Below, piece by piece: positions 14,200 to 64,000 of a stretch of 64,000 nt of DNA. The notes under the pieces were generated by a model. It had not been told where the DNA came from. It ran no database searches and worked only from the letters and a program-made list of their open reading frames with translations. Where the stretch lies: the NCBI GenBank assembly GCA_964247055.1, contig OZ176056.1, forward strand, positions 7,998,001 through 8,062,000. The letters are read 5' to 3'. The position numbers were made by a program, and so were the translations under genes. This DNA is from Paragordius varius (taxonomy: Eukaryota > Animalia > Nematomorpha). Each line of letters opens with the position of its first letter. Positions within the stretch are counted from its first letter, which is position 1.

Positions 14200-14570
14200 C
14201 AGTAAAAATTGAAATTATACGGACAAAACCTAAAAATATTAAACCGTACTATTTTAAACTTCATTTTTTAAAAGATAAAATTAAATTTTCTTAACTTATC
14301 ATTGATAAAACTCATATTACAGTAAACATTGAAATTACACTGATGTTAAAATAAGGTAGTTTTTTTTCTAAAGACAGCCATGCTTAATTATTTCGGCATA
14401 AATATTAATTTAAAATTTTGAAACATATGATTGACTGTGTTAAATTTACAATTTTTTCCCTTTATCTGCAATCGAAAATGATAAGTTATATATCAATTTT
14501 AAAAATATGGTTGACTTTTGAAAAATATTTGTCTATATATTTTTACGTTTTGTCCGTAAATACTACTTCA
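14200..14570. mobile_element. MITE family B (TA|CAGTAAAAATTGAAATTATACGGACAAAACG...)
   Basis: TA-CAGT terminus typical of Tc1/mariner-type elements; inverted arm cgttttgtccgta at about 14545-14558. Confidence 0.75.
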
Positions 14571-15194
14571 AGGCATTAGGTGACCGTATGATATATCAAA
14601 ACAATGAACACGTTACACACCATGGTATATTTATATTAAATAATTTTAATTTTTTATACACCAATTACATATAATAATCGAAAAAAGGGAAAATAGACAA
14701 CTTAGCAGAGATGATAAATAAGTGTAATTTTTATGCATGACTTTAGAGCTAATTCAAAGTGGCACGACCATGATTGGCGCATTAATAAAGAACTATTATT
14801 AAACCTAAATAGTCTACCCTTTTTTAAAAAAATGCATTTAAATTTTTATGTGGAATCCAGGATAGAACCCTGTTCTTTGTCCAACCATAAACGCCGTTTA
14901 AGATAGAAATTAGGAACATCATATTGATTGATTTTTACGTTTTTTAGAAAATTACATTGAAGCTTTGATTTTAGGGTTTACTTTATAATTAAGTATATAG
15001 GGGACATAGTCGACACATAAATTAAATAAAAGTGATTATTCAGTATCGTGCTTACTTTCCAAATTGAATAACACAATTGCATATTTTTTATACATAAATT
15101 AAATTATTTTTAGAAACGCTAAGAATTTTGATATATAATAATTTATTTATACTATAGCAATATGTAATACAAAATAAATTTTATAAATTTGTAT

Positions 15195-18100: not shown

Positions 18101-21100
18101 TATTTTAATTTAATGTTTTTCAACACTAACGCATCGTTTACTTTTAAGATGTAAATTAATAACCACCAATTCAATTATATATTTCACTATTGTATGTAAT
18201 CAACATTTAATATATAAAAAAGGTAGGTTTGAAAAAGTATGACTTTCGCTCGGATAAAAAAATACAGTAAAAATTGGAATTATACGGACAAAATGTTAAA
18301 ATATAAGACAAATATTTTTTTCTGAAAAATAACCATACTTATAAATACTTGATTTTTTTTAATTATAACTAATTATTTTAAATTGCAAGGAACATAATAG
18401 AAATGTATCTGGTAACACAATTAATCACGATTGTAATTAAATGATTTTTATAGGATAGATTAAGGTTTATAAATGTATGGTTGTTTTTTGAAAAAAATGT
18501 AGTTGTTTTTATATTTTTACGTTTTTGTCTGTATAATTTCAGATTTTTACTGTATTTGTCTTTTAGTTTTATATTTTTTGTCCTTTTAATAACTATTACA
18601 GTAAATAAACTTTATAAATGGAAATTAGATCTAAATACACATATTACAATACCACAATTCATTAATTTTGATAATTTTACAAAATTATCATTTAAACCAA
18701 CCTCTAAAAGTATTTTTAGGATCTCTTCACGAATCTGCAAATGGGGTAAAGTTTTATCCGATAGGGGTTGTAACCAATCCTGACAATAGAAAATATATTA
18801 ACAAATAATTAATTTTTTTAACCCTTAAAATGGCAAAAAAAAATATTTATTATTTAAAATTTCATAATAAAGTATATATATATATTTTAGTAAAATTTTC
18901 AAAAAAAGGTTTATTCAAATTATATTAAAAATTTCAAACAATAAAAATTTCAAATTGATTTTTATATAAATTCAAACAATAAAATAATACCGCAAAAGCA
19001 GTCAAAATTCCGGCATCCAGAAAAGCGCCTTGTAAATCCACTCTAAAGTAACATTGATTTTAAATTATAGTAACACAAAATATTTATATATATATTTTTT
19101 TTTTAAATAAAAAAACTAAATTTTAATGGAATTAAAGAATAAAAAGAAAAAACCTTCGAAGCTGAGCAATAATGGTGGGTAGAAGTCTCAATTTTTTGAA
19201 AGCTGGCAATTTTCTTGTATTTAACACACGATCTTCCTATTACAAATTTATTATAGATGTAAATTAAAGGCCATATAAAGACGCACCCGAAAAGGGTCAA
19301 CCATATAAAAATTATGTATTTTTTCCAAAATATAAATTATAAAGAGACGGAGAGGGGCATTACAATAAAATAATAATTTAAATTAATTTTTTAATATTTA
19401 TTCTACCCAACAACAATTAAATAATTTATATATAAAATTTTTAGCTCATTCATTAGAGAGCTTCAAAATACCCACACACTTATAAATTGGGAAAGAATAA
19501 TAAATGTATTCGAATTAAACGATTTTTATAAATTATAAACGAGAAGCTTATTTATAAATCAAAGTGCCTAATAGATATCGGATTCTAATTTTAATTTATA
19601 GGGGCAAGGAATTAATTTTTAAAAATTTCATATTTTTAATATTAAGATATCTAAACAACTAAAAGCTTATTTGAAAATTAGAAAAGTACCTAATAGAGAT
19701 CAGAATTTATTTTTTATTTATAGGCTCTATTTATATTGAAAAAACACTTATTTTCTTAATTAAAATATCCAAAATTAACAACTGAAAGATTATTTATAAA
19801 TCAAAGTGCCTAATAGAGATCAGAATCTAATTTTAATTTATAGGCTCTTTTATATTTTAAAAACACTAATTTTTAAATTAAAATATCCAAAATTAAGAAC
19901 TAGAAGCATATTTATAAATCAAACTGCCTAATAGAGGTCAAATTCTAATTTAATTTATAAGCTCCATTTATTTAAAAATTTCATTTTAAATTAAAATATC
20001 TTAAACTAAAAGCTTATTTATAAATCAAAGTACCTATTAGAGATCAGAATTTAATTTTAATTTATAGGGGCGAAGAATTTATCATTAAAAAATTATTGTT
20101 TTTACATATAACATTTACAATTCAATTTCACCCTTAAACAATTCAAATTCACCCTTGAACAATTGAAATTCACCCTTGAACAATTCAAATTCACCCTTGA
20201 ACAATTCAAATTCACCTTTGAACAATTCAAATTCACCCTCGAACAATTCAAATTCACCCTCAAATAAAATATATGTTTTTTAAGATTAAAAATTATTTAT
20301 ATTTTATATATTTTTCAAAAATAAAAATTTTGTTTTGAATTAAAATAATACTGAAAAAAATAATAAACTATACCATAAACATATATTTCATATTAATAAT
20401 GAATTTATATTAGTTCGAAAACACATAATTTATTTTTAGGGTGAATTTGAATTGTTCAAGGGTGAATTTGAATTGTAAATGGTATATTATGTTAATAAAC
20501 TTAACTAACTTCCCAAGCCGTTCTCATTTTATCGATCAGGGCGGCTATCACATCATCCGCATCGTTTATAAAATCTCCGCGATCACCTGATTTATTATTT
20601 AGGGAATTCGAATTTGAGGAATAATATGAAAATCTTTTACGGTTTGCTCGTTGACGTTGACTTTGCAGCTTTTTGCGTTCCATCATAACATCGAAATCGG
20701 AAATCATTCCAATAGAGTTTTCTGTACTGTTATTATTTTTAGTAAAATGTTTTTGTAGAATAAAAATTAAAATTGCAAAAAACTAATATTTTAACCCTAA
20801 TTTTTTTCCTATATAACTTAGTTAAAATCTGACATGCCGCCAGCGGAAATTATTCCAATAGAGTTTTCTGTGCTATTATTATTTCTAGTAAAATGTTTTT
20901 GTAGAATAAAAACTAAAATTGCAAAAAAAACCATATATTTTTAATCTTGATATCTTTCTATAAAACTTAGTCAAGACATACTGTAGTCAAAACTCTGATT
21001 CTTACTATTAATAATTCTATTTTTTAGAGTTAAATAGAATAAAAATTAAATATAGTGAGTGGTATTAAAAAGACATCAAAAAGTATAAAAATTCAACATT

Positions 21101-28090: not shown

Positions 28091-30962
28091 TTATATGGCA
28101 ATTTTATCGATGGCTTTAAAGAGTTGATCGCATGTCAAAGTTTCAGGTAGTTTGGTTAAGAACTGTGCCGATTGTATAAAATCCATATTCAGCAATATAT
28201 CCTCGTAAAGTTTCAGTATTCCTACACAAAAAAAAATTTTAAAATGAACCAATTACACTTCAAATTCACCCTAAAATAAATTATTATGTGTTTATTAAGA
28301 TTAAAAGTTACTTATATTTTTGTATTTTTTTAAAATATAAAATTTTGTTTAAAATAAAAATAATCCTGAGAAAATAAGCTATGCCATAAAGATATAATTC
28401 ATATTAATGAGGAGTTGGATATTAGTCCGAAAACACATAATTTATTTTTAGGGTGAATTTGAATTGTTCAGGGGTGAAATTGAATTGTAAATGGTATATA
28501 ATATATAATTAAAGGTTTTAATTTTAAATTAATTATGTACAGTAAATTTGAAGTTATACGGACAAAAATTATATATCATGAAAAATATTTTTTAACCAAA
28601 AGCAAATTACTTTCCTTGCTCCTATACAAATTAATTAATTACAATTGTAAAATACATGATGATTGATATCGTTATCAATATATATTTCTATTACATAATT
28701 TGCAAATTAATTAAAACAATGAGTTAATAAAAAAAACAAAATGTAAAAATTATAGTTATCTTTTTCTTAGAATCAAAAATTGTCTCGTTATTTTTACGTT
28801 ATATCCGTGTAATTCAAATTTTACTTTATGTTAGCTTTTGCAAGCAAGGTTAAATATGAAATAATTTATCGCCATACTAAACAACCCTAATTATAAATTT
28901 TATATCAAAATTAAATAAATTATTTAATTTTTTAAAAATATACCTTTAATAATAAAAATACCGAAAAAGTAAAATTACCTAAAGCTGTTTTAAACAAAAA
29001 AGTTTCACCATCCCGTAAAAATATATCCCAAATGCGACAAGTTATATCCAAATGAACCGATTTACTGTATATCGTGAATATCCTATAAATAATAAAAAAA
29101 ATGTAAAATTATTTATATATTTAAAAGTTAGATATATATAGACACTTTAAGACTTTTTCTTGTTTTTGTCCGCGATGACATATTGGGGTATATTTATATC
29201 TAAGAGCTTTTCAATTTTATAAATTAAATACTGTTTTGTAAGTGGTTTTAGTTAAAATTTAATTATCAAATATTGTTCTTCTGTATTAGATAATATACGA
29301 TTTGGAACCAGACAGCTCTTTTAAAATTAATTTATATCAAGTTTTTGCTGGTGAAATGCAACATTAAGGCTTATTAAGAATTACATTTTATCATAATATA
29401 TATATTTAGTTTCAATTATCATTAGCGATTTAAATCAATTTATCGAAAGTTTTTGAGATAAGGATTTGTTAAAAAAAAATTTGTTTATGCCCCTAAAAGA
29501 CTAAAGTAAGCATATATTTAAATTAGGTCTAATACCTTAAATACTTTTTAAAATAATCAAATTTTAAATCGTGCTGGGATATAAAACTACCCCACAAGGT
29601 CATGAAGTGTTAATAAAAACAAAATTGGTGGTCAAAAATAAGATAAAATACCAATCTGTAAGATATAAATCGGGTGTAAAATTGAGATTTTGAAAATGTT
29701 CATACAATGAAGGACAATTTGAGTCAAGGAATTCGGAATATAGCTCAAAATAACGTGCCATCTAACATATAATAAGTATTTATAAATATAATTATTCAAA
29801 GAATAAAATAGGGTTTAAAACCATAAAATGATTAATTTTTTATGTCATTTTAAATGGTGAATCGGCATAATTCTAGAAAAATATAAAAAAAATTAAAGTT
29901 AACCATTGTATTATATTTTTAAGTTAAATGTTTACTAATAATTTACCAAAACCCTCTATTAAAACTTATAATCAGAACCTGTATACAACATTATAAAGAG
30001 GGCAAAATTTTCACAAAACTTAAACAAATATAAAAAAATTTTTAAAATAAATTTTACATTTTCTTGATCTAGGCCATAAAAAGTTTGAAAACATGGTAGT
30101 TCCATTAAACAACAAAAACTTATGAAGGCTGGTTTAAGGTTCATATTGAGGAGCAGTATAGCGGCTATAAAGGACATACCCTGTACCTGAACATAAAATT
30201 TAAAAATGGAATATAAAAAAGCAATATATAATATAAAAAACAATGTAAAATCATTAAAAAATTTAATTTTATTCCAAAAAGTTTATATAATCGAATAAGT
30301 AATAAAGCAACTATATATTATCACCTATAATATTGTACAATATAGTACGGAAAAAAAGAACTAAACCCTAATATAAGCTATGGATTATATGGTAAAAATT
30401 GAAACTATACGGACAAAACGTAAAAATATAAAGACAATTTTTTTTCAAAAAACAACCTTACTTAAAAAGCCTAATTTTTCTCATATAATATATAAATAAT
30501 TGTATTATCAATTTACATATCAATTTTTTACTTTGCAGTTTAAATCAATTATATTTAATGCAAACATTTAAAATGTATGGGTTGCCTTTTAGGAAAAAAT
30601 ATTTGTCCTTAATATTTTTTAAGTTTTGTCCGTATAATTCCAATTCTTTACTGTATATGAGAAAATTTACTATATCGTATTAATTTTTCAAACTAAACTT
30701 TTTTTAGATATAGCATCCGTATATTTTAAATTTAAAACTAAAAAAAATATGGAATTACATAAGCCATTTCCGGATTGTACAGGGTATAAGAAATTAATAA
30801 TCGCTTAAGTGTATTATGATATGGTCCCCCGTCTTGAAAAATGGCAAGGTGTGGAAAAGTTCTACTAACATCTAAATCTAAAAGAAAATTTATAAAAAAA
30901 ATTATTTTTATTACATAAATAATGTAAAATTATAAGGGTGGAAATAAAAAACATTTAAATAA

Positions 30963-31003
<41 letters not shown>

Positions 31004-34000
31004 CGAGCTAAATACTTACGAAATATGTGCATTTCATAATATATAAATATACAATGATGATATAAAACCACCAAATTTTTTTAAAAAATTTAAATTTATC
31101 CTATGCTTTAAAAGGGCACTTTAATAAGTTTTTTTGAGTAACCTCTTTATATTATATCCACATTTCTAGTTTTTAGTAAAAATAACTGATAAATTATAAT
31201 TATAACTAAGGTGCATGCATTTAAACACTCAAACCAATGATTTTTAAAAATAGTTAAAACCACTCAACCCCGATTTCATATACCATTTACACTTCAAATT
31301 CACCCTAAAATAAATTAAGTATTATTAAGACTAAAAATTATTTATATGTTTTTTGTTAAAAATAAAAGATAATACTAAAAAAATAAATTATGCCATAAAG
31401 ATATATTTCATATTAATTAATGAAGAGTTATGTTAGCCCGAAAACACATAATTTATTTTTATGAATTTGAATTGTATAGCACGTCTTAAAAATTCCGATA
31501 TTTATCATTTTATTTCTCAAAAAATTTATATTATATCCTTACTTATGTTAGCTAATGCATTTTTTGTACTATTGGCATCTTGAGTTGAAGCTATATCAGG
31601 GAAAAATGTACAAGGTATAATATCTTTTTTGGTTTGATTTAAACAATCATTCGATAAAATATTATTTCTTGGTATATTATTATTTTCTAATTTGTTATTA
31701 GGATCGTTGGTGGAAGTCTTAGATTCTAAGCATAAATGCGTTGAAATTTCATCATTATTGATATTGTTTTGGGGTTTAATACTATAGTTTTTAGAGCAAT
31801 TTGAATTGATATTTTGAGCAGTTTGATGATCCTGTTCTGTCTCCAATAACAAATCATCACAACAGGCAAATAGTGTATCGATAACTTCTATAAATAAAGT
31901 ATAAAAAATTTCGAAAAAATCATAGAATAATTTATATGCCATATTAATGCATTTGAAAAACAATATCTAAAAAAAATTTCGTGTAAAATACTTAAAGGTA
32001 CGTATAGTAAAAAAATGTTACCATAGAGCGTTAAAGATTAAAATTTCATAAGCTTTTTCTTATAAAGGGGCTAAATATATAATTATCAATCAATAATAAA
32101 AATATTTTTTAGGGTATATTTTAATTTTATTTTTACTACATTACATTTGTTTGACAATAATCGAAAATTCATACTTTAGATAAAATAAATTTAACTTAAT
32201 GCTGAAATATAAATTAATTATACTTATGCCTATTTAACTGCCTGAGTTAACTATACAAAAAAATTTCAAGTTTTTAACATTCACTTTCATATTTCAATAC
32301 AATTATTACTAAAACCATAAAAAATACAGTAAATATTGAAATTATACGGACAAAACGTAAAAATATAAAAACATAAAAAAAATTTTTTTTTCAAAAAACA
32401 ACCCTCTCTTTTTTAAGCCTTAATTACGCTCATAATAAATTACATAACTATAACTGTAATATATGTATTTGATAGTTTTACCAATCAATATTTTGCAATT
32501 AATTTACATACTTTGCAGTTTAAAACAATGAGTTATATTTAAAACAAAACTAACTCAAGATTCAAATAGTATAGTAGTTGTCTTTTAGAAAAAAAATATT
32601 TGTTCTTATAATTTAAAATAGATGTATAATAAACCTGAATCAAGTTTTTTTTCTAAATCCACGTTTTCTATGAGAGCCAAATACCATACACGCCCGCGAA
32701 CACATGGGGGAAGTCCCAGGGACCAGAGATTATAAGTTTTACGGAGGTTTTTTCTAGTTTTTGGAATTTAAATTTTTGTGAAAAATAATGCAAATTAATA
32801 TTTACCAATTCAAATCAAATGTAAAATGTAATAACCTGAAAAATTTATATACAGTAAAAAACAAAAATTTAAGCGTAAAAATAATATAATGTATATTTAA
32901 ATTACAAAATATTTCTTGCTAATATATATATATATATATATTTATATATAAAGCTGACTAAAAAGGCATGGTAGTATATTTAAATATACCATTTACACTC
33001 CAAATTCAGCCTTAAACAATTCAAATTCACCCTTGAAAATTCTACAAACTCACCCTAAAATAAATTATGTGTTTTTTTGAGATTAAAAATTACCTATATT
33101 TTTTTTAAAAAAATTTTGTTTGCAATTAAAATAATACTGAAAAGTTAATAATAAACTATGCCATAATACATTTCATAAAAATGTTGAATAAGTTATATTA
33201 GCTGCCCGAAGAGACATAATTCAATTTTAAGGTGAATTTAAATTGTTCAAGAGTGAGTATTTGAATTACTGTAAATGGTATATATAATCCTACTAAAACA
33301 TATCAAATTATTAACTAACTAAAAAGCTCAAATATATTGATCGTATAAATAATTTTTTTTTCAAACTTTAGAGTTTTTAAATAAAATATATATGTGTATA
33401 TATATACGAGGTATCCCAATTAGGTATAATTTCATTCAACCAAAGCCTAACACAATGATCCAATTTTTCTTCTTGTTTAAGGCGCTGAACAGCAAGCTTA
33501 CGTTCTTTTTTGATTTCTTTAGCTTCTATCGAGATAGATAGATAAATAGTTTATATATTAACAAAAAATTAGTTTTAATATAAACATTATGAAATACATA
33601 TATACATATATTTTGACTATATAATTATTTTGTCTAAGTTAGTTTTATAAAAAACGGAATGATCACGGTCGTATTAATTGATAATGGAAGTTAATTATAA
33701 AAAACAGCCTCTATTCATAACGATATTTTTTCAACACATTAAAGCCAATTTAAACAATTAACGCTAATCGAAAAGGCATAGGTAAACGAAAAAATAATTA
33801 ATATGGTTATTTGTGAACAAAGAGTTGATTATAATATTTTCACAGGTTTCAGCTCTTTAAAAACAATTCAAATCTTCATAAAATTTGAATCTTTTACTGG
33901 CATTTACTGTGATTTTTTATTCGTTACAATAATAATCTCACAAAACCTACCCCTTTTCTTTGATGCTTCTATGAGTTGATTGTATAGATCTGTGTGTTGT

Positions 34001-46903: not shown

Positions 46904-49900
46904 ATGGACGGACAAACTTTAAACAAATCTACGAATATGGTTGACGAAGTTATCGGAAGAACTAAATTAAAACATCCAAAACCAAAAAAGTGGTCAAATC
47001 ACTTTGAATTTATTCTTTCCCTCATTGGATATGGTATAAGTGTGGGTAGTGTTTGGAGATTCCCATACATTTGTTATCGGAATGGCGGGGGTTTTTTCTT
47101 AATATAAAATATAATATACCATTTACAGTTCAATTTCACCCTTAAACAATTCAAATTCACCCTTGAACAATTCAAATTCCCCCTTGAACAATTCAAATTC
47201 ACCCTCGAACAATTCAAATTCACCCTCAAATAAAATATATGTTTTTTGAGATTTAAAATTACCTATATTTTATATATTTTTCAAAAATAAAAGTTTTGTT
47301 TTAACTGAAAAAATAATAAACTATACCATAAACATATATTTCATATTAATAATGAATTATACTAGTTTGATAACACATAATTTATTTTTAGGGGGAATTT
47401 GAATTGTTCGAAGGTGAATTTGAATTGTTCAAGGGTGAATATGAATTGTTTAAGGGTGAACTTGAACTCTAAATGGTATATAATATTCAAAGGTGCTTTC
47501 CTTATTGCCTATTTTATCGTTCTCCTATTATGTGGTGTACCCTTATACTTTATGGAATTAGCTTTGGGCCAATTCACGAGCAAAGGACCACTGCGAATAT
47601 GGGCTTTTTGTCCCCTGCTAAAAGGTAAACTTCTATTGGATTTTTAACCATGTCTATTATTTTTGTTAAGGGGGACGTCATATAATATATATTTTTTACG
47701 GCATTTGTCAATAATATAATTATAGCCTTTATTTTAAAATTTTGGTAAAATCATATATTTGCACTTAATATGAATACGCCTTAACTTTCTAGAACCATGC
47801 AAAAAGCGAATGTATGGATGCAATATAAAAATTATTAATTTATATATAACTTTAGGGGTGTCCAACACAGATACTAGCTTTATAAAATATGTATAATAAC
47901 AAATAAGCTACAATAAATATATTATATTTTAATCATTGGACTGTAAAAATATTTTACCATCGCTATATAACATTAATTATTTTATTTTTCGTTTATAACA
48001 TTAGCAAATCAAGGTGCGCCACAATATTTAAAACTCGATAATTTATATTTTTATAAAAAGATTTGAATCTATTCACAGTCGTTTATAAATTTGGAAAATT
48101 GTTAATTTTTACCTAGAAAAAACTTATAGTATTTCAACAATCCAACAGTAAGGGTAATTTGTGGTATATATACCATATACGATTCAAATTCACCCTTGAA
48201 CAATTCGATTCACCCTAAAAATAAATTATGTTTTTTCGGGCTAATATAAATCATCGTTAATAAGAAATAAACCTATGGCATAGTTTATTATTTTTTTCAG
48301 TATTACATTAATTTTAAACGAAATTAAATTTTAACAGTAAAAAACGCATAATTTATTTTAGGGTGAATTTGAATTGTTCAAGGGTGAATTTGAATTGTTT
48401 AAGCGTGAATTTGAACTTTAAATTTCTGAATAATATCTTATTACAAAATAATTTAAAGTAGATGATATAATTTATAATTGCAATAATATATTTTTTTAAC
48501 TGATAATATGTTATATTTGTTTGGTTTTTTTTTCTTCATAAAATATTTTTGGATGGCCACGCATTGGAAACCCCTGATTACAAATATAAAAAAATCAATA
48601 GATAGTTTTTAACTTTACAGATGTGACAGGAAATATTTAGACATAAATGTGTAAGCAAATTTAAAAACAGAGCTAAAATATCCATTTCATTTATAAGGTA
48701 TTAAAATAGTCTTTGTTTATGTTTCTATGGGTTAATAAAAACTGTCCAACACGTAAGTTACTTTTAGATTATTAAAATTGTATTTCACTCTTAACATGCA
48801 AAAAGCTTGGTTAAAATTCGACATTGTCTAAATTTTATATATGTGTATAATTTTTTTCGTTTAAGTTTAATGGGGAAACGTCCGTAATGGTATTAAATTT
48901 TTTTTTACTAAAATTCAAAGGCTTTGTCAATGGTAATTTATACAAACAAAGCATGTTTTGATTCCATATATTTTTAAAAGTGCGCAAAATGCAATATAAC
49001 CTCCGGTATTAATGCTTTATAATCAAAAATAGATTTTATTACAAAGGAAATATTTTAGCCATGCCATATATATATATATTTTATTTATACAATTTTACAA
49101 AGGCTATATATTATAATTAATTATGTGTCAACCTTTTAAGATAGCTTTACCTTTTTTAAAAGACCTCTGAGTATGTGAGTTTTGTCAAATGTGTATGTTT
49201 GCAGAGAATGTTATAATTACATTACTGAGGGCTAACCTAAATATTTTATAAATCTTTTATTGAATTCAAACCAAAAACTATATTTTACAAATAAAAAGCT
49301 TATAAAATCCCTTTACCATAATTAACACTGGGTGTTTGTTTTACGTAAACTATTGTGATGACATATATAAACTCTGCCACACAAAATAAATGGGCCTGGT
49401 GCATTATAATATTCTTGACGTGGGTTAAAATTTACATAATTACGCCAATGTAATTTTAAAATATATAAAATATTGGAGAAAATGTAAAATTTAATGTGGA
49501 ACGACATTAAAAAACATGCTTAGGAAGATATAATAAAAAAATTGATAGCACTGAGTCTTATTTATACTTAGCCAGTGTTCTTAAACAAAAAAACAATTAT
49601 GACATCAAAGAGTGTCTCATAATATAACTCCATATAATTTGACAAAAAATAAAATTAAATGAAGCGAGTAAAAATTTCGTTACTAACGACATTTTTGAAT
49701 CATACCAGACCTATATTTTATTAATTTTAAATAAGTCGAACCATATATGTTTAGACCGAAATAGCTAGATAGGTTGGTTGAATAAGGAAATTTGGGGTCA
49801 AGCGCCATATCAGAAGCTTAACAACTAACAAATTTTAATATTTCCTCCTATTTTAACTATAAATTAGCTCAATAAACCATATAAGTAATTTTAAATCGTA

Positions 49901-50647
49901 ACATAAAAGTAGCCCAAAACCAGACGTTTAAAAGCTTTTTTATTGTACACCTAATACATTGATCAAAATTTTATAATATACAAAAGTTTAAGATGTCATT
50001 TAAATATGAACTTTTGACCGAAGCTTTTGCGATAATTTTAATATGCCAATTTAGTATCAAAACGTTTTTAGTAAAATAATAACTAAAATATTATAAACTT
50101 TATTATAAGCATTAAATTTTATACGAACTTAATATAATCAAAATTTAAATGTTCCCTCTCTCTATACATCAAGGCCAAAATATTAAAAATCAGCTGTTGC
50201 GACAATATATTTGGCATCTATTTCCATTTTTATATGGCGTGGAGTAGACCGCAAGATTTTTTCGGAATATGTAATTTCATTCCCTCATATATTTAGTTTC
50301 CTAAAACGTACAAGCGAATCGGAAAATTTTAAACATTCTAAAAATATAATTTTTGATATGTTCAAAAATATTAGTAATGCAATATCGCTTTCATATTTAA
50401 ATGGCATAGGAGTTGGGATCGGGATCATTCTGTTGAATTTCATTGATAGCACATGTTTTAATTTGATTCTTGCCCTTGCCATATATTATGTCGTATCAGC
50501 CTTCCAAAAACCATTACCTTGGGGAACGTGTAAAAACTCATGGAACACCCCAGGGTGTTTTGTGTTCAAAGACATTCATCAAAATGCTTCAAGACCGATT
50601 GACGGTATATTAATTACAATATAGCTTGAAAAATTATTATGATATAT

Positions 50648-50697
<50 letters not shown>

Positions 50698-53600
50698 ATA
50701 AAATATTTATCATACATGGGGTGCTTTTATTATGCCTCACGCGTTATTCCTTCAAGAAAAACTTTTCACTTATATAGCGATTCCTATAAATCAAAATTTG
50801 CATAATGATGCTCATTTCAAATTTTTTCTATTAAAATTTAAAATAAGCAAATAAATAAATATAATATTTTTATTAGTGAGTTCCGAAATTTTTATAATTT
50901 AGACTCCGCTAAATTGAGTGGCTTTTTTTAAAATAAACACAAAAGAGCCAAGGTTGGTCGATAGATTTTTAATATCTAGAACACAAATCATATTTAAAAA
51001 AATAAATTTTATTATAGCGTAGATGTTATTTGAAGCACAATGCGCACAGTACAAAAACACTTTTAAAACTAAAAAATACCATTATTATTAAAGGCTGAAT
51101 AGTTACCCAGACTCTTAATGAATATTATCTTGCCTTCAAATTTAAGCATTTAAAATCCAATGTGTCAGATCTAATACCTAGAAATAGATTTATTGTTACA
51201 GCACACAAAAAAGTAAGTATAAGGATTATTATGGCGCTTTTGCTTTTGGTTTACATAGTTCTACCACTTTTGTGGTAACTATTTCATATCAGAAAATGGC
51301 ATTTGTGCACATTTTGTCAAATAATAAATGTGGAGCCAAATTAATCCTTATAAAAATATTTTTAAACGACAATATTTTTATAAATTTATAAATGTTTAGA
51401 ATAAACTATGAAAGTCTCAAATCAATAAAATAGAGATGTACATTGGTAACAATTAATCACATGTTTTATGAATGTTATTTAATGATTTTAATAGGATTAA
51501 TTAAGGTATGAAAAGAAAAGAAAATGTCCTTATATTTTTTACATTTTGTTTGTGAGTTAAATTTAATTTTTAATTGTAATTAAGATATATCACATCGATT
51601 AAGGTAAAAATTTGATTTAAATTATACATAGCATCTCCCAATATGACTGAACATTTTGCAAATTATACATCAGTCGAATATATTCCATCAAAATTTAGCA
51701 ATTTAAATTTTGCTGAAATTTCAACATCATCCACCTTTGAATTTTTCAAGTAGATTTAAATTTTTTTAAATAAATATTTTTATCTAATTTTCGTTCAAAA
51801 ATAAAATCGAATTAATATAATCATCAGTAAAAATTGAAGTTTTACGGAGAAAATGTATAAATATAAAGACAACAACATTTATTTTTTAAAAGACAACCAT
51901 ACTTTTTCATACCATAATTTATTCAATCAAAATCATTTAATAACAATCGTAAAATATTGATTATGCTACCAATATACATCTTATTTTGGAGTTTAAAAAA
52001 TGAGTTATATTTAAAAAATCAAGAATTAAAACGTAAGGTTGTCTTTTAAAAAAAATATTTGTCTTTATTTTTTTACGTTTTGTCCGAATAATTTCTATTT
52101 TTAATGTTTATTAATTTTTACATTATAAAAAAGTATTTTTAAAATGTGAATTTTGCACTTTTGATGCCTCACTATATCTAAGAAGCCATTTTTACTGAAG
52201 CAAATGTTTTAGAGATGCATTTTGATAGTTGATTTCAAACTATAGTAGGGCAATTCGCCAGTAGTGTATGAAAAAAGAAAGGAAATAATTGTTTATTCAA
52301 CCTTTTGTTGTTTTTTCCATACACTACTGTGTTGCAAATTGACCAACTATAGTGTGTAAGCAACTATACCAAAATGCATACTATGCCTCTTAAGCTCAAA
52401 AAAAACTCAATCAATATTTTATTTGTAAAGTTTTTATTTAGTTACACAAAATTAAATATTATAAATATTAAAGCTACAAAAATGTGAGGCACACACACTT
52501 TCATTTTTTGCATCTCATAAATGCCATTATTATGCTTATTTTATCAATAGTCGTCATATTTTGGAGATTAGTAAAGGATTAGATAATATGGGTTCTTTCA
52601 ACGTACGATTGTTGGGTTGTTTCGTCCTGGCATGGATTTTAACCTATTTTTGTTTGATGGGTGGAATCAAAGCCACCGGAAAGGTTCCCATATAATAATA
52701 TACTCTAAAATTAACACCATTGACTGATAAAAATATTTATTACTACATTAAAACTTGAAATTACACAGAGACGACGTAAAAATATAAAGACAAATATTTT
52801 TATCTACAAGACAACCAACCATACTTTTTAAAACCTTGTTTTTTCTTATAAAGCTATTTAGTTACAATTGTGAAAAATATAAAATGTTGATTGTGTTATT
52901 TCTATATATCTCTATTTCACACTTTGCCATTTAAAACAATGAGAGAGTTATATTAAAATAAATCATGGTTAAAGTATGTATGGTTGTCTTTTAGGAAAAA
53001 CATATTTGTCTTTATATTTTCACGTTTTGTCCGTATAATTTCAACAATTTTTACTGTAATTTATAAATTTATTCACCAAGATTGTATATTTAACCGCAAT
53101 ACTCCCGTACATTATACTCACAGCCTTGTTGATAAGATCACTTTACTTACCTGGAGCACTAACAGGCATCTTATTTTTCATAAAACCGGATTGGGGCAAA
53201 TTCAAAGAACTAACGGTATCACAAAATGCATTAATAAACCACATTCATTCCCCTTCCTTCTTTTTAATGAATTTATCTTTTTATGACACAATATATTATA
53301 TTATAACATATTGTCTTTCATGTAGATCGCATTTTTAAGTTTTAAAAAGGATCCCTAGGGTTTAGTTATAATGATTTTTAGTGTACATTTCAACTTTTGT
53401 GAATATTTTAAAGTTTTTTCATCATGAACCAAACAAATTAAAAAAAATTAATTTATTCATTTTATAGTAAAATTTTGCAAATATTTTACAATTCAAATTC
53501 ACCCTTAATGAAAATTATGTGTTTTCGGGCTAATATAACTCATTATTAATATAAAATATATCTTTATAGCATATTTTATTTTTTCAGTATCATTTTAAAT

Positions 53601-56600
53601 AAAAACGAAATTTCAATTTTTAAAAAACTAAAAAATCCAGGTAAGTAATATTTAATCTTAAAACATAACTTATTTTAGGGTAAATTTGGATTGTAAATGG
53701 TATATATATTTATTAAAATATACTAAATTTTGAATTAAGAAAATTTATGTTTTTAATAAAGGGTCAAAGCAAAGAGGGAGTATAAAATATATCCCTTAAT
53801 CCATTTTATTTTTTATGATAAATAATTATAGATATTATTATTATAATTATGTAATTATTTGCTATTTTTTGTTGATGAAAGATTTGGAAGGAGGCAGCTA
53901 CTCAGGTATTTTATTTTCTGGGACCAGGATGGGGTTGTCTTATAACGATAGCAAGTTATAACAAATTTCGTGAAAATTGCCTACGGTATCCTATATGAAA
54001 AGCTCTACTTAAATTTAATTTTACATTATGAATTGAAATTATACGGGGGCAAAACGTATAAAAACATTAATAAAACAAATATTTATTCATTTTTGTTAAC
54101 AAAAAGGCAGCCATACTTTTTATACCTTAATTTTTGAATATATATATATATATATCTTATATATTTAGAACAATTGTAAAATATATCATTTTGTTTAAGA
54201 TATTAATATACATTTTTATTTCACATGCAATTTAACACTTTATAACTTTTCCACTTTTTAGTCTGCGAATACATATTGGGTAGTTGTATATCCCTGAGCT
54301 CAATCTTGTAAATAACATAGTGTTTGTAAGTTATTTTATTTAAAATTTAATTATTAAATATTTGTTCTTCTGTGTAGATAAAATATATTTTTTACAGTTG
54401 TAACTTTAGAGCAGGGGTGTTCATCACAGATATTTGCGGGTTGCTGGAAATTTTTCTTTTTATTTATTTATTTTGTAAATTTTAGATGATATATTCACTA
54501 AATAATCCTAAATTTTTGATTGATATCCAATTTTTTAATTTTTTAAATTTTTTTTAGAGCACTTTTTTTTCTACCGAAAAAAGAGTGTTGAACACCCCCT
54601 GTTCTAGAACTTATTGAAGTTAATTATTTACTAACCAAAATACACCTTTATTTGCCTAATATTTTAGCAATTTAATAACAATTGACGAAAAAAAATAGCG
54701 GCGAAAATGGGATCAGATTTTTTACATTTTTATAAAAAAATTTGAGTAAGCATACGCGCTAAAAGATAAAGAAAGCATATTTTTAAATTTCGGCCTAATA
54801 TATTAAATATTTTTTAAGATATTTACAAATCGTTCTGGAATATAAAACTACCCCAAACAGTTATAAGGTGTTGAAACAATTAATTGTATTCAAAAAATTA
54901 AGTTAAGAAAGTGGTTTTTAAAAAATATTTTTTTTTATAATTTTTTAGTTTTGTCCCTATAATTTCAATTTTATTATATATATGTTTTAATCACGGATTA
55001 ATCAGTGGTTTTAAAGCTTTTAATATTATTTTTTATTATTATCCAATTTACTATAAACAAAAATTTTTTTCAATAGATAGAGTAGATTTTTTTGGAATAT
55101 CACAACTATTGCGGTTTTATCGGTTATTTTGGATTTTATAATATTTAATCAAAATTACGCAATATACTTACTATTCATATCTATGCATTTTAATTGGAAA
55201 CCATTAAAAAATGGTGAAACATGTGTCAAATTTTTCATAAATTAAGACCATTTGCTCCTCCCCCGCTTTTAAAAGAACCCAAAGAAACTAAATTTAGTCC
55301 CTATTTCTAACTAAGCAATTGATCTAACTTTAAACTAAAGTAATTCATATAACATTCAAAATATTTTTTAAATCTTAAAAAAGTAGTTATTTGTCTATAT
55401 ATATATATATATATATATATAGTCATGTATCCTTTATTTATCAAAAATTTATTTATTTTTTCGTTAAATGGGTATAAACATTTGGTAAAGAATGGAAAAA
55501 ACAAGAGCTCTATGGTAATTCTTATACTTTTTTGATGAATATGATATTGTTAATACCATAGAGCTCTTGTTTTTTCCATTCTTTACCAAATATTTATACC
55601 CATTTAACAAGAAGAAAAAATAAATAAATTTTTAATGAAATAAAGGATACATGACTGTATATATGATAGTGATAGCATTACAGTCCCCTTAATATCGGGT
55701 CTAACATCCGTATATGCTGGATTCATAGTTTTTGCTTTGATTGGATTCATGTCAAACGAATTAGCCTTACCTATTGAAATGGTTGCCACACATGGTTAAA
55801 TTTATTTTGCATATAAAAGAGAATTTATACGGACAAAACGTAAAAATATAGAGACTATTTTTTATTTCTAAAAGACAACCCCATACTTTTAAAATCTTAA
55901 TATTTTTTCAATTACTACATTTTTTAAGAGTCCAAAGTATAAAATAGATATGTATATTGGTAACATAATCATTTACATGTTTTCTGATTGTTATAAAATG
56001 TTTTAAATATGAATAAAGGTATGAAAAAGTTTAATTGTCTTTTAAAAAAAATTTGTCTTTATATTTTTACGTTTTGTCTGTATAATTTCATTTTTACTGT
56101 AACTCATTTAAAAATGCACACTTCTTTAACGCCATGTTAATATTTGAAAAATTAATGAATAAATAAGTATTACATCAGCTCAAATCTGTATTAAAAATGA
56201 CTTTCATGGAGCTTTTATTAAAGGCCTTCAATTTTATCAACTTTAGTGATTATTAATATTGTGCATTTTAGTATCTGTGAACTTATTTTATAGTCAGTCA
56301 AATAAAAGAAATGGTTTATTAAATGTTAAAAATACTGATCCACAAAATTATTCCGTACTGCACATATGAAAAAGGATTGAGGTGAGAAACATAGGCCTAT
56401 TTGTAATGCTAAATTTTGAGAATTTTATAGCAATTTATGTTAACAATTTATTGTATGTATTCATTAGATGCGGAATTTTGTGGATTTTAAGGTTGAAAAT
56501 AATTATAATATAAAATCTATTTTCAAATTATTATTCCGTTTATTACCATCAATTAAAAAATTATTTTTTTGTTTTATATTGTTAATAAAAATAATAAATA

Positions 56601-59600
56601 TTTTTAAGATAATTTAAATACAAATAAATTGCGGTTTGTTACATTGTAACATTTATATTTTGTTTGTTATACATTGTTAACTATCATTAATTAAAAAATA
56701 TCAGTCATGTATCCTTTATTTTATCAAAAATTTTTTCGTTAAATGGGCATAAATATTTGGTAAAGAATGGAAAAACCAATAGCTCTATGGTAATTCTTAT
56801 ACTTTTTTGATGAATATAATATTGTTAACCATAAAGCTCTTGTTTTATCCATTCTTTACCAAATATACCCATTTAACAAAACAAAATAAATTTTTGATAA
56901 AATAAAGGATACACGACTGTATATAGTTAAAATGTTTCACTTTCTATGTATAAAAATCTATCTCTCCTAAAATGTATAAATTAAGCTATAAATTATATCA
57001 AGGTTGATTGATTAACAAACAGACAAATTTGATGACATTTTGGTATAATATACCATTTGCAGTTCAAATTTACCATTTAACAATTGTGAAATTCACCCGC
57101 ACACAATAATTCACCCTTGAACACTTCACATTCACCCTAAAAATAAATTTTGTGTTTTCGAACTAATATAACTCATTATTAATATGAAATTTATCTTTAT
57201 GGCATAGTTTATTATTTTTTCAGTATTATTTTAATTTAAAGCAAATTTTTATTTTTAAAAAATATATAAAATTACAGGTAATTTTTAATCTTAAAAAAAC
57301 ATATAATTTATCTGAGGGTGAATATGAATTGTTCGAGGATGAATTTGAGTTCAAGGGTGAATTTGAATTGTTAATGGTATATTATATAAAACAGGTCTAG
57401 CTTTGGCCTTCATGGTTTACCCAGAAGCTCTGCTGCATATGCCATGGTCCAACTTGTGGTCAGTTCTGTTTTTCCTTATGCTATGGTCCGTGGGGATCGA
57501 CACTTTGGTTTTTTTATTTTACAAAAGTTATAAAAGTTAGTCTCATTAAATGTTTTAATTTTATAACTGTATCCTCCAAATTAATCTGATTTAGTCGATA
57601 GTCTATACTTTATACTCTATAGATTATAAGATTTAAAGATGGAGAAGTTATACATTAGTAAATATTGAAATTATACAAATGAAAAAGGTTAAAAAACTCA
57701 AAAGCAATTTTTTTTCCAATAATTAAATTGATTAATTATCTACAATTGTAACTATAATATTGGACTGTGTTACCAATTTACATCTCTATTTCATTTGCAA
57801 TTTAAAACAATGATTTTACAAAGTCACGTTTAAAAAAGTATAGCGGTCTAAAAATATTTGCCAGAATGAAAATTTTTACTGTATTATTACCTAATATGGA
57901 ATTAAATTAAATTTAGATGTTTGAAAATAATTTATAGTTTGTGGAACTTGAAGTTGTCTATACTGCAATGTATGAAATTTTACCAACAAAAATTAAAGCT
58001 CATAGATTTGGTTTTAGCTTTGTTGCATCAATCATTATGTTTGGATTAGGTCTACCTTACGTCCTAAAAGTACTATATCTTAAATTTTTTTACATTTACA
58101 TTAAAAAATGAAATTGTACAGACAAAACGTAAAAATATAAAAACAACATTTTTTTCTTCGAAAAAAGACTATTATACTTTTTTTAATTAATCCCATTAAA
58201 ATCATTTAACAAAAAACATGTAATTGATTATGTTACCCATATACATCGCTTACTTTAGAGTTTAAAGGAAAGAGTAATATTTGAAAAAAATTAAAATTTC
58301 AAAAGTATGATTGTCTTTTAGAAAAAAATGATTGTATTTAAATTTTACGTTTTGTCCGTATAATTTTAATTTTAATTATAATTTGTTGTATTTATCAACA
58401 AACCAGTTTGCTAAATTGGATAAATAATAATTATTATTTTAATATGCGACCTCTACGTATACTGAAAAATATTTAAAATCATATAAAACAAATATCAAAT
58501 GAAAGGAAATTGCTACCAAGGTAAATTGAGTATTTTAGTGCGGTTTCAGTATTTAGAGATATTTATAAAATCAACAAAATTTTGTCGACATAAGATTTTT
58601 TTTTAACATATGCGTGTTTTTGAAAATAGCTTTCTAAAGCATCTTGGCTTTTTTTATATTAGTTTATAGTTTAACGCATTATCAATAAAAGTTAGATCAT
58701 GCATGAAAAATTATCCTAAACCAATAAAGTTAACATTTTACCTTTATAATTTAAATCTTGTTCAAAAAAATTGCGATTTTTTCCTTCTATTTTGTTTATA
58801 AAAAAATCCTTAAACACGGCTAGTAAACCCCAAAATTTTAAGTATTTAAAATTATATGGACAAAACGTACAAACAAAACAATATTTTTCTCAAAAGCCAA
58901 CATACTTCTTTAAACCTCATTTTATCCTATAAAAATTATTTAAATACAATCGTAAAATACACATGATTGATTGTGTTACCAATTTACATCTCCATTTTAT
59001 ACTTTGAAGTTTTAACAATCAGTAATATTTCAAAAAATAAGATTTTAATTTGTCTTTATATTTTTACGATTGTGATTACAATTTAAATTTTATATTTTGT
59101 CCGGCTGAATACTATAGTTATATTTCCCTATCATTTTATATTTATCAAAACATAGAGGATAATTATAAAGCGTTTTACCAAAATACAATCTAAAAATCTA
59201 GTTTTTATTTTTACGTTTTCATTTAAGGGCGGTATATATTTGTTTCAACTCATGGATTGGTATTTATCATTAGTATCAGTGATGATCTTTGCCTTATTGG
59301 AAACATTAGCAGTGGCCTGGATATATGGTATATTATGAAAAATTCCAATTACAGTAAAAATGAAATTATACGGACAAAACGTAAAAATATAAAGACAAAT
59401 ATTTTTTCTTAAAGACAACCAAACGATTTTTTTAAATTTTGTTTGTTTTTTCAAATATAAATGATTATTTGAAACTGCAATGTATAATATAGAGATGTAA
59501 ATTGGTAACACAATCAAATATTGTATTTTGAGATTTTAATTAAATAATTTATATAGCAAAAATTAAAAGGTTTTAAAAAGTATGGTTATCATTGCAAAAA

Positions 59601-61362
59601 ATATGTGTCTTATTATTTTTACGTTTTGTCCATATATTTTCAGTATTTACTGTATATAAAATATACTATAAATGAAAATGGTTCACTCATCACTGTCAGC
59701 CATGGACAAGTTATTTAGGTGTTAAAGTTTTTTGGATTCCTTAATAAAAGTTAGTGAATTACTTTTTAATCGTCGAACTTATGAATTACTATGGGGGAGA
59801 AAATTTAGTGACTAACAATGAAAATGTCCAAAAATATTTTAATTAATATATATTTATATAACGTTATAGGTGCCGATAAATTTTTAAGCGATATAGAATT
59901 CATGTTAGACCGGAAAATTAAATATGCCAGTATGTGGAAGTTTTTGTGGAAATACCTGAATCCATTTCTCCTTCTTGTAAGTGAGAAACCAAATTTTAAT
60001 TAAATTACAATAGTAAAAATTGAAATTATGCGGACAAAACGGGACGTAAAAATATAAAGACAGATATTTTTTCAAAAGACCGTTTTATACTTTTTTAAAC
60101 TTTAACCTTTTACATTTTAATTCATTGTTTTATACTACAAATTAATAAATAGTGATAGATATTGGTAACACAATTAATTTTATGCATTTTACAATTGTAA
60201 TGATATTTTTGTTAATATTATCAACGAGAACGAATATTTTCGGTTAAAATAATAATTTGAATTCTCGTAAAATTTATTAAATTGAGCGTCTGTATAATTT
60301 ATTATACTTTACTTAATATTTTAGGTGATTCTAGGGTCCAATATCTTTTTATATGTCCCAGTTCAATATGCCAATTACATTTTTCCTTTGTGGGCAACTA
60401 ATATTGGCTGGTGTATTGCTTTTATTAGCTTAATTCCCATTCCCTGTTATATGATATATCATTTTTGGCGGTATAATAAGGGCGATTCCTGGACAGAGGT
60501 TTTTATTTTGCAAAATGCATTGTTTTTATATAATTTAATATTTCACTATGATGATAACAATTTAATTAATACACTAAAGTTTGAAATTATACAGATAAGT
60601 AAAATCAAAAGACAAATATTTTTTCTGAAGGCTAGCATATTTTTTAAACATGGTTTTTTTAAATATACCGTTTAGACTTCAAGAGTGTTTTGACTTCAAG
60701 TTGGTATTTACTCTTTAGAAACTTCAATTTGGTTTTTAAAAATTTTAAGTTGGTTCTTGAACATTTCAAAAATAATATCTATCATTTAAAAACCAATTTG
60801 TTTCAAACTAATTTTTTCCATTTCGCCAATATCAATTATAAATGTTTTCAACGAAACATTGTAATTAATCACCCAGAAAACTATTTTTTTTCAATTCCAT
60901 GTTGAAATCTTAATAAAATTAATAATTTTTTGAAAGCTTAATAAAGATTATGGTTTCTGAATGATTAAAAGTTGATATGGATTAAAGTTTGGTTAAGAGC
61001 GAGCAAGATATTAGGTTAAAAATACTAAAATATACGAATCTTAAACAGTTTCATTGATAAATTAAAACATTTTAATTGAACATTCAACTTGAAGTGTTCA
61101 GAGAACAACTGTGTTTAAGGGCAGTCTTAAAGCACAATGGAAAATATTAAAGTTTTTAAAAGATATTTGTTATTTTATACACATACGGTTATGTCAGAAT
61201 ATTTTCAAATTTTACCGTATTTATTTTGATAACTCATGTTTTATCTAGAAATTTCGTAAAGCTTTACAATCATCCCCGGATTGGTATCCTACGGAAGAAC
61301 CGTATAAAAGCAACTATATAAATTCCGAAAACTCTTTAACTTTATTGAATTATGCGACATAA
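46904..61362 (+). CDS. SLC6/NSS Na+/Cl- neurotransmitter or amino-acid transporter family member (GlyT-like at some sites, strongly divergent), ~622 aa
   Basis: 14 in-phase exons: 46904-47090, 47493-47624, 50410-50604, 51632-51749, 52551-52683, 53081-53215, 53882-53985, 55670-55794, 57395-57507, 57938-58069, 59228-59327, 59870-59976, 60325-60498 and 61249-61362. Motifs: [74 protein letters not shown]. Confidence 0.95.
47119..47476. mobile_element. MITE family A copy in SLC6 intron 1
   Basis: TA TSDs at 47117-47118 and 47477-47478; 21-bp units on both arms. Confidence 0.9.
47853..48576. mobile_element. hAT-like non-autonomous element (contains nested family A)
   Basis: taggggtgtccaa ... ttggaaacccctg; TSD not convincing. 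A related end (attagacacccctg) lies at about 12910-12923. Confidence 0.5.
48173..48420. mobile_element. MITE family A copy nested in a hAT-like element
   Basis: Family A body with a degenerate right end. Confidence 0.7.
50650..50694. repeat. (TA)n microsatellite
   Basis: Long TA run. Others lie at about 3951-3995, 11083-11101, 15932-15958, 30967-31001, 46617-46650, 55396-55420 and 63699-63726; a (CA)n lies at about 46768-46787. Confidence 0.95.
52190..52400. repeat. Imperfect palindrome, probable MITE
   Basis: tgcattttgatagtt...actatagt..cagtagtgtatgaaaaaa versus ttttccatacactactg...actatagt...aactataccaaaatgca. Confidence 0.6.
52746..53056. mobile_element. MITE family B copy (SLC6 intron 5)
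   Basis: Both arms present; ends tttttactg|TA 24 nt before the acceptor. Confidence 0.85.
53481..53700. mobile_element. MITE family A copy (SLC6 intron 6)
   Basis: aattcaaattcaccc...gggtaaatttggattgtaaatgg|TA. Confidence 0.75.
54412..54601. mobile_element. hAT-like MITE
   Basis: TIR CAGGGGTGTTCA / TGAACACCCCCTG; flanks ctttagag and ttctagaa resemble a decayed 8-bp NTCTAGAN TSD. Confidence 0.75.
55420..55657. mobile_element. Near-palindromic MITE family H
   Basis: About 100-bp inverted arms around a ~35-bp spacer, ends (c)agtcatg / catgactg|TA; second copy at 56702-56919. Confidence 0.85.
56702..56919. mobile_element. MITE family H copy
   Basis: Same arms and spacer as 55420-55657. Confidence 0.85.
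57053..57377. mobile_element. MITE family A copy (SLC6 intron 8)
   Basis: TA|ccatttgcag...ttaatgg|TA, ending about 17 nt before the exon 9 acceptor. Confidence 0.85.
59352..59652. mobile_element. MITE family B copy (SLC6 intron 11)
   Basis: TA|cagtaaaaatgaaattatacggacaaaacg...gtatttactg|TA. Further copies lie near 51824-52100, 54030-54250, 55810-56099, 57655-57882, 58100-58375, 58845-59090, 60010-60300, 60580-60660 and 63740-64000. Confidence 0.85.
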
Positions 61363-63731: not shown

Positions 63732-64000
63732 GGAACATTTTTGCAAAAAAACTTAGTAAGAATCGAATATAAACGGACAAAATTTTTTTATCAAAAGACA
63801 ACCATACTTTTTCATACCTTATTTTTTATCCTATTAAAATTATTTAATAATAATCGTAAAACATGTAATTATATGTTACCAATATACATCTTTATACTTT
63901 GGGGTTTAAAAGAATGGTTATATTTTTTAAAAAAAACAATATATAAAAAGTATGATTGTCTTTTGGAAAAAAAATATTTGTCTTTTATTTTGTCCGTAAA

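Follow-up and report, generated by a model that had tools for sequence, protein, structure and literature searches.

A 64,000-nt stretch of the horsehair worm Paragordius varius (assembly GCA_964247055.1, contig OZ176056.1, forward-strand positions 7,998,001-8,062,000; hereafter the window) carries a gene that looks like a fast-evolving, selectively maintained ecdysozoan member of the glycine transporter (GlyT)-like SLC6 group whose first sodium site (Na1) has been dismantled. SLC6 carriers are textbook cases of fixed coupling to Na+ and Cl-. On the best reading of its sequence, the P. varius protein is a carrier that retains the second sodium site (Na2) but no longer has Na1 or the full Cl- site, and its substrate has probably changed. 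More specifically, we give a probability of about 0.5 to a LeuT-fold carrier that would be driven at most via Na2, would probably be independent of Cl-, and would take a substrate lacking the usual contact between carboxylate and Na1, which may be positively charged. The gene is an intact, lineage-specific departure from the pattern of a familiar transporter family, and the hairworm Gordionus supplies its natural comparison partner.

G+C is very low across the window (0.21-0.30). Between 46.7 and 64 kb, SLC6 motifs appear in a succession of short open segments when the three forward frames are translated. Eight of the nine exon translations scanned matched the Pfam family SNF (PF00209), with E values from 1.8e-15 to 4.5e-08, scores exceeding the 27-bit cut-off and consecutive profile positions from 3 to 364. 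Exon boundaries were set from the sequence at the boundaries, and the exons were aligned singly to the solved structures of SERT, GlyT1 and GlyT2. The resulting model has 14 exons on the + strand (46904-61362) and 622 codons plus a stop in an open frame, and all 13 introns are GT-AG, with 26 splice dinucleotides intact. The G+C content is 0.37 in exons and 0.226 in introns. Model residues 19-618 align with arthropod GlyT proteins, hydrophobic segments stand at all 12 places expected for the transmembrane helices (TM1-12), and the structure alignments are free of gaps within these helices. Extracellular loop 2 (EL2) contains a Cys pair and three N-x-S/T motifs. An earlier note on this DNA had described an SLC6 transporter at 46904-58069 with an intact reading frame and an EL2 disulfide. 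The family assignment held, on the SNF matches and on an end-to-end alignment with a GlyT1-like protein of Gordionus, as did the open frame and the Cys pair, which lies in exon 3. The proposed end did not: position 58069 is the end of exon 10 in TM9, and TM10-12 and the C-terminus are encoded by exons 11-14 (59228-61362).

Residue numbers below are those of human SERT (hSERT) unless given as residues of the P. varius model. The side-chain ligands of Na1 are a Ser in TM6, an Asn in TM1 and an Asn in TM7; those of Na2 are a Ser and an Asp in TM8, while Cl- is bound by the TM2 Tyr, the TM6 Gln, the TM6 Ser and the TM7 Ser (PMC6742698). All three Na1 side chains are replaced in the P. varius protein, by model residues Ser49, Phe312 and Ser344. 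In TM1, which was aligned to GlyT1 (GYAVGLGNVWRFPY) and, as exon-1 residues 25-67, to hSERT residues 77-119 (6vrh), N101 is Ser49 (47048-47050), position 98 is occupied by Ser46 (47039-47041), and A96, the residue giving a backbone ligand, is Gly44. In TM6, aligned to GlyT2 (QIFFSL..W) and to hSERT 325-359, Q332 is kept as Gln308, F335 is Tyr311, S336 is Phe312 (53915-53917), and F341 is Trp317 as in glycine transporters. In TM7, PLISGLTS stands against SITNCATS of GlyT1, with N368 replaced by Ser344 (55695-55697, codon TCG), Gly345 and Leu346 following, and S372 kept as Ser348. With all three Na1 side chains replaced, altered ion coupling is probable.

Na2, on the other hand, is present: TM8 (GIDTL plus FVELE versus GLDTM of GlyT2) retains D437 as Asp412 and has Thr413 in place of S438, and TM1 contributes Gly42. 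Three of the four Cl- ligands are found (Tyr69 at Y121, Gln308 and Ser348), the TM6 Ser being Phe312, and the Pro beside the Cl- Tyr (P120) is Ala at model residue 68. The earlier note had named the Ser at position 98 and the changes at N101, S336, F341 and N368. Each is borne out by the exon alignments to solved structures, namely GlyT1, TauT and SERT for exon 1, GlyT2, GlyT1 and SERT for exon 7, and GlyT1 341-381 for exon 8. The exon 8 acceptor was picked for a length match with relatives, and the alignment to the Gordionus protein XP_065312493.1 confirms it. Beyond the earlier list we found A96G, P120A, loss of R79, D452E and acidic residues at the I172 and G442 positions.

The gates are retained to different degrees. 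The outer gate pair Arg52/Glu483 is kept, as are the TM2 Glu (Glu84, E136) and the glycines of the unwound helices. At the inner gate the Arg R79 is missing; its place is taken by Pro27 in the multiple alignment and by Lys28 in a pairwise alignment with a one-residue gap (Pro27/Lys28, 46982-46987), with Lys26 and Lys29 flanking, and its Asp partner D452 is Glu427 (57974-57976). A Lys-Glu pair may do the job of the Arg-Asp pair, and because such a pair may persist we do not count gating as lost. A derivative that keeps the fold and has lost coupled transport, serving as a transceptor sensor, a leak or channel-like pathway or a protein partner, would be in keeping with the loss of three Na1 side chains, the absent canonical inner-gate Arg, the D452E change and the accelerated evolution in the tree described below. 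We consider it unlikely, since the protein keeps Na2, the outer gate, the TM2 Glu, the Gln, Tyr and Ser of the Cl- site and the glycines of the unwound helices, features that serve chiefly the transport cycle, since the lysines around the lost Arg and the Glu in place of Asp may preserve the charge pair, and since hSERT mutants at N101 still transport (PMC4607855). Deciding between a change of coupling, a change of substrate and a role without transport is a matter of inference.

To place the substitutions within the family, 211 full-length SLC6 proteins were compared (GlyT, PROT-like, GAT/BGT/CT1, ine and SERT-like), the B0AT/NTT4, insect NAT and bacterial branches being covered through a review alone (PMC8310414). 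The Na1 triplet N101/S336/N368 reads NSN in 188 of the 211 proteins, and none of the 211 has more than two Na1 changes, a Phe at S336, an Asp at the I172 position or a Glu at the G442 position. Every member of the set has Pro120 and Arg79. Loss of all three Na1 residues lies beyond the variation of this set, no protein in it carrying three changes. Departures at Na1 elsewhere include Ser at N101 with Thr at S336 in the flea beetle Phyllotreta striolata (P0261), Gly at S336 in Drosophila GlyTs (P0257-P0274), Ala at S336 in the Mormon cricket Anabrus simplex (P0025/P0156), and Asp plus Asp at Na1 ligands in a BGT1-like protein of the frog Hyperolius (P0354).

Arthropod GlyTs (Drosophila CG5549-type; Anabrus, Aedes, Tenebrio) form a sister clade in the ecdysozoan GlyT-like group and are about 40% identical to the P. 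varius protein over its full length. Both have the Trp at F341 and the TM8 motif D-(S/T)-x-F-V-Q/E-x-E. However, essentially all arthropod members have Gly98, Asn101, Tyr175 and Asn368, from which the P. varius protein differs, and their residue at the S336 position is Ser, in a few cases Gly or Ala and never Phe, while that of P. varius is Phe.

The substrate pocket is changed as well. In glycine transporters, a Gly at the position of SERT Asp98 gives space for the substrate carboxylate, the hydroxyl of the TM3 Tyr (hSERT Y176, LeuT Y108) binds that carboxylate, and a Trp at the F341 position narrows the pocket. Gly is found at the first of these positions in 209 of the 210 other proteins, and Ser46 in P. 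varius. TM3 reads STCFNL versus ASYYNT in hSERT, so that Y175 is Cys122 and Y176 is Phe123 (50457-50459); the pocket-narrowing Trp is kept as Trp317. Two acidic residues are new to the pocket, Asp119 (50445-50447) at I172 and Glu417 (57944-57946) at G442. Two changes given in the earlier note are weaker than claimed because they had been judged against human SERT and not against the gene's own clade: Y176F is confirmed by the hSERT alignment but is not rare by itself (F in 16 of 211), and the Glu at G442 is present but amounts to Q to E relative to the nearest relatives, Q being found in 95 of 211 proteins and in Gordionus.

An ordinary glycine or amino-acid transporter, in which Ser would still hold Na+ at the first site and a fast lineage would have gathered nearly neutral changes, has several points in its favour. 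Asn to Ser retains an oxygen ligand, working relatives depart from the consensus too (Gly in Drosophila GlyT and Ala in Anabrus at S336, Ser plus Thr in Phyllotreta), and the gene is a member of the GlyT-like clade with the small-pocket Trp. It is nonetheless improbable in our view, and more so than a protein that has given up coupled transport. The bulky Phe at S336, unique among the 211 proteins, takes away a ligand common to Na1 and Cl-; none of the three Na1 ligands is conserved, and A96G and P120A come on top; the Gly that leaves space for the carboxylate, otherwise invariant, has given way to Ser; and the Y176 hydroxyl is lost.

The closest relatives are found in another hairworm genus. 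A library search with exon 3 gave no close orthologue and nothing above about 51% identity; its matches were "GlyT1-like" proteins of arthropods and one incomplete protein from Gordionus sp. m RMFG-2023 (P0030). A word search using the open frame of exon 3 gave no match, its length filter leaving out full-length kin. A search from P0030 led to a second Gordionus protein, "glycine transporter 1-like" (XP_065312493.1, P0389; isoform X2, P0281), which is 54.7% identical to the P. varius model end to end, exon 10 included. Its locus (L002, at 32.82 Mb of OX940783.2) matches the window exon for exon in tblastx, in the same exon order. In a maximum-likelihood tree of 37 SLC6 proteins the P. varius gene pairs with XP_065312493.1 (support 100/97), P0030 joins next (100/99) and a Priapulus protein after it (97/91). 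This hairworm and Priapulus group stands beside arthropod GlyT, the join being weak (81/40). The phylogeny proposed as a check in the earlier note thus puts the gene in the glycine-transporter-like clade, within its ecdysozoan group and as sister to the Gordionus GlyT1-like gene.

The two hairworm genes share Ser at position 98, a residue other than Tyr at Y175, Tyr at F335 and Thr at S438. In contrast, Gordionus XP_065312493.1 keeps N101, S336, N368, Y176, P120, the inner-gate Arg and D452, all of which are altered in P. varius. It also has an N-terminus longer by 72 residues, an EL2 without an intron and a 3.7-fold shorter branch. Because the Gordionus relative keeps N101, S336 and N368, the loss of Na1 appears to be specific to the P. 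varius lineage. The codon of the Ser at N368 is TCG here versus AAT in Gordionus; with three nucleotide differences, the change is old and took several steps.

The second Gordionus paralogue, P0030, is canonical in having Gly98, Asn101 and Tyr-Tyr. At its locus (P0030/P0042; L001:10100-40494, OX940783.2, about 34.43 Mb) exons for TM1-TM5 and TM11-TM12 are recognisable, and tblastn with either hairworm protein did not find exons for TM6-TM10. The annotated product has 442 residues, of which the final ~150 are of low complexity and not SLC6-like. Either decay of this copy or an annotation error may explain this.

Several observations suggest that the P. varius gene has remained under constraint. 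The family consensus is retained at 0.88, 0.66, 0.60, 0.38 and 0.16 of the positions in column classes of falling conservation, the corresponding values for Gordionus being 0.95, 0.77, 0.72, 0.51 and 0.22. The nonsynonymous distance (dN) to the Gordionus gene is 0.30, and the synonymous distance (dS) is saturated (2.4 by LWL85; 20 by maximum likelihood), so that dN and a rough upper bound on their ratio are usable but no ratio for the terminal branch. The dN/dS comparison suggested in the earlier note accordingly places dN below a saturated dS and goes no further. Mutations to a stop, a frameshift or a lost splice site have a target of about 230-300 site equivalents (1,866 coding bases and 13 introns), and with the gene intact, any neutral period would at the 95% level be shorter than about 0.01 substitutions per site. 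This bound is tiny compared with a terminal branch of 1.15 amino-acid changes per site.

The changes are also concentrated at functional positions. Among 117 columns conserved at >=90%, 12 are changed in the P. varius lineage alone, and these include five of the 12 ion-site or gate positions versus seven of the 105 other conserved ones (Fisher p 0.0026). All three Na1 side chains are among the 12 changes (hypergeometric p ~9e-4). The latter is the cleaner figure, because gate positions were added to the functional set after the data had been seen.

A young pseudogene or decaying duplicate, in which constraint was lost recently and the frame has stayed open by luck, is the least probable of the three alternatives, although the terminal branch is long, the relative rate is 46:13 and the second Gordionus paralogue apparently lacks exons for TM6-TM10. 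No stop, frameshift or broken splice site occurs in the coding bases and introns despite DNA of 23% G+C, the time available for neutral drift is limited as calculated above, and 88% of the columns conserved at >=95% are kept. Moreover, the three-base difference at the N368 codon indicates that key changes are old, and the frame has outlasted them. An old pseudogene is ruled out by the intact frame, the 26 splice dinucleotides and a residue retention that follows conservation. The statement of the earlier note that the protein is maintained and not a pseudogene therefore stands as far as an old pseudogene is concerned, given also the dN, while some relaxed constraint is possible in view of the long branch.

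For the preferred reading, a carrier without Na1, the following order of events can be proposed. The site for the substrate carboxylate would have been altered first, in the common ancestor of the P. varius gene and XP_065312493.1; the Na1 ligands would then have become dispensable and would have been lost later, in the P. varius lineage only. This order is the simplest because Ser98 and the loss of Y175 are common to both hairworm genes and the loss of Na1 is found in one. The protein would go on cycling in the manner of LeuT-fold carriers, with at most Na2 to drive it and probably no dependence on Cl-, and its substrate would no longer be held through the contact between carboxylate and Na1. 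The Asp at the I172 position and the Glu at the G442 position would suit a cationic or amine-bearing substrate.

Known transporters provide partial parallels. The hSERT mutants N101A and N101C transport without a requirement for Cl- (PMC4607855), which indicates that the TM1 Asn position sets ion coupling and not folding. The same Asn is changed in the P. varius protein, but N101A and N101C are single changes made in the laboratory to a monoamine transporter that retains S336 and N368 and whose Na1 site remains occupied, or accepts Ca2+. Among natural SLC6 nutrient carriers, KAAT1 and CAATCH1, which accept K+, and B0AT1 and B0AT2, which are Cl- independent, owe their atypical ion dependence to changes at the Na1, Na2 and Cl- sites or in their vicinity (PMC8310414), and a non-standard ion dependence is likewise what we propose for the P. 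varius protein. The differences in KAAT1, however, lie at the equivalents of LeuT G20, N21 and A22 and not at the three Na1 side-chain ligands (PMC8310414), and these four carriers belong to branches of SLC6 other than that of the P. varius gene.

A number of points weigh against a carrier of this kind. The proposed substrate class is speculation, and Ser can supply an oxygen ligand, so some binding of Na+ at the reshaped site is possible. Orthology to XP_065312493.1, as opposed to a lineage-specific duplicate, is suggested by the tree and by best similarity; tblastx of the window against the 10-kb flanks of both Gordionus loci, L001 and L002, gave no match outside the gene. The set of functional sites was partly fixed after the data had been seen, namely for the inner-gate pair. 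The terminal branch is 3.7 times that of Gordionus (1.15 versus 0.31), and a relative-rate count of 46 changes in P. varius to 13 in Gordionus (p 1.7e-5) corresponds to a rate about 3.5 times faster. This speed-up could reflect relaxed constraint and not a new function, and the rate comparison covers this gene alone with no control gene, so that a genome-wide rate effect is not separable from it.

The reading is of interest for both transport mechanism and parasite nutrition. It would provide a natural and apparently maintained protein without all three Na1 ligands in which Na2 and the gates are retained. The P. varius/Gordionus pair would offer a ready comparison of whether Na1 serves substrate binding or the driving force, and would also bear on the evolutionary re-coupling of LeuT-fold carriers. 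Hairworms live in the host without a working gut and feed through the body wall, which makes their carriers the nutritional interface with the insect. A far-reaching extension would regard the gene as one case of horsehair worms moving away from sodium coupling across the genome, with a carrier free of Na1 and independent of Cl-, perhaps a uniporter or coupled to H+ or K+, that takes a cationic or amine nutrient from insect haemolymph across the body wall by means of the two acidic pocket residues. We hold this extension to be quite doubtful; if several carrier families in the genome had indeed rewritten their Na+ sites, it would point to an unusual transport physiology.

The individual exons, all on the + strand, are as follows. 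Exon 1 (46904-47090) carries the start codon, the N-terminus and TM1 (SNF E 1.8e-15), and exon 2 (47493-47624; SNF E 5.9e-16) carries TM2. Exon 3 (50410-50604), aligned to hSERT 161-210, encodes TM3 and the first part of EL2, including the Cys pair. The remainder of EL2, which is variable and bears N-glycosylation motifs, is assigned to exon 4 (51632-51749) on the basis of frame-keeping GT-AG boundaries and the end-to-end alignment with the Gordionus protein. TM4 lies in exon 5 (52551-52683; SNF E 1e-08; 65% to the Gordionus locus in tblastx), TM5 and EL3 in exon 6 (53081-53215; SNF E 8.3e-11, also matched to the Gordionus locus by tblastx), TM6 in exon 7 (53882-53985) and TM7 in exon 8 (55670-55794). 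Exon 9 (57395-57507), aligned to GlyT2 545-579, comprises EL4 and the first half of TM8 with the Na2 ligands. The second half of TM8, intracellular loop 4 and TM9 are in exon 10 (57938-58069), which has no match in the PDB when searched alone and is 55% identical to the Gordionus exon. Exon 11 (59228-59327) encodes TM10 with Glu483, the extracellular-gate partner at E493. Exon 12 (59870-59976; EL6 and the start of TM11) was defined by sequence boundaries and the Gordionus locus match, and exon 13 (60325-60498; TM11-TM12) by these and hydropathy. Exon 14 (61249-61362) contains the C-terminal tail and the stop codon and shows a weak match to the C-terminus of the Gordionus protein. Alternative or duplicated exons carrying the canonical residues were looked for in the window and none was found.

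Twelve of the 13 intron positions are common to the P. varius gene and the gene of Gordionus XP_065312493.1. The claim of intact ancestral intron positions is upheld for these twelve but not for intron 3 in EL2 (50605-51631; 1,027 nt), which is present in P. varius only, the Gordionus gene being uninterrupted there (L002:23022-23312). This difference is an intron gain or loss between the hairworm genera. The Gordionus gene spans 53 kb, about 3.7 times the length of the P. varius gene, and one of its introns contains an open frame of 486 residues with a transposase-like DUF659 domain (L002:33458-34918).

Repeats are found in and around the P. varius gene. Copies of a ~240-bp repeat (68-85% identity, both orientations), resembling a miniature inverted-repeat transposable element, occur in introns 3, 5, 8, 10, 11 and 12 and elsewhere. 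The stretches within the gene are at 51432-52107, 52731-52829, 55806-56114, 58071-58381, 58849-59048, 59343-59657 and 60014-60099, and those in the rest of the window at 14520-18554, 30393-32595 and 63766-63973. Introns 1, 2 and 8 contain repeats of tandem-like appearance (47108-47470, 48318-48458 and 57282-57371), whose translation gives NLNCSRV or FKFTLEQ over and over.

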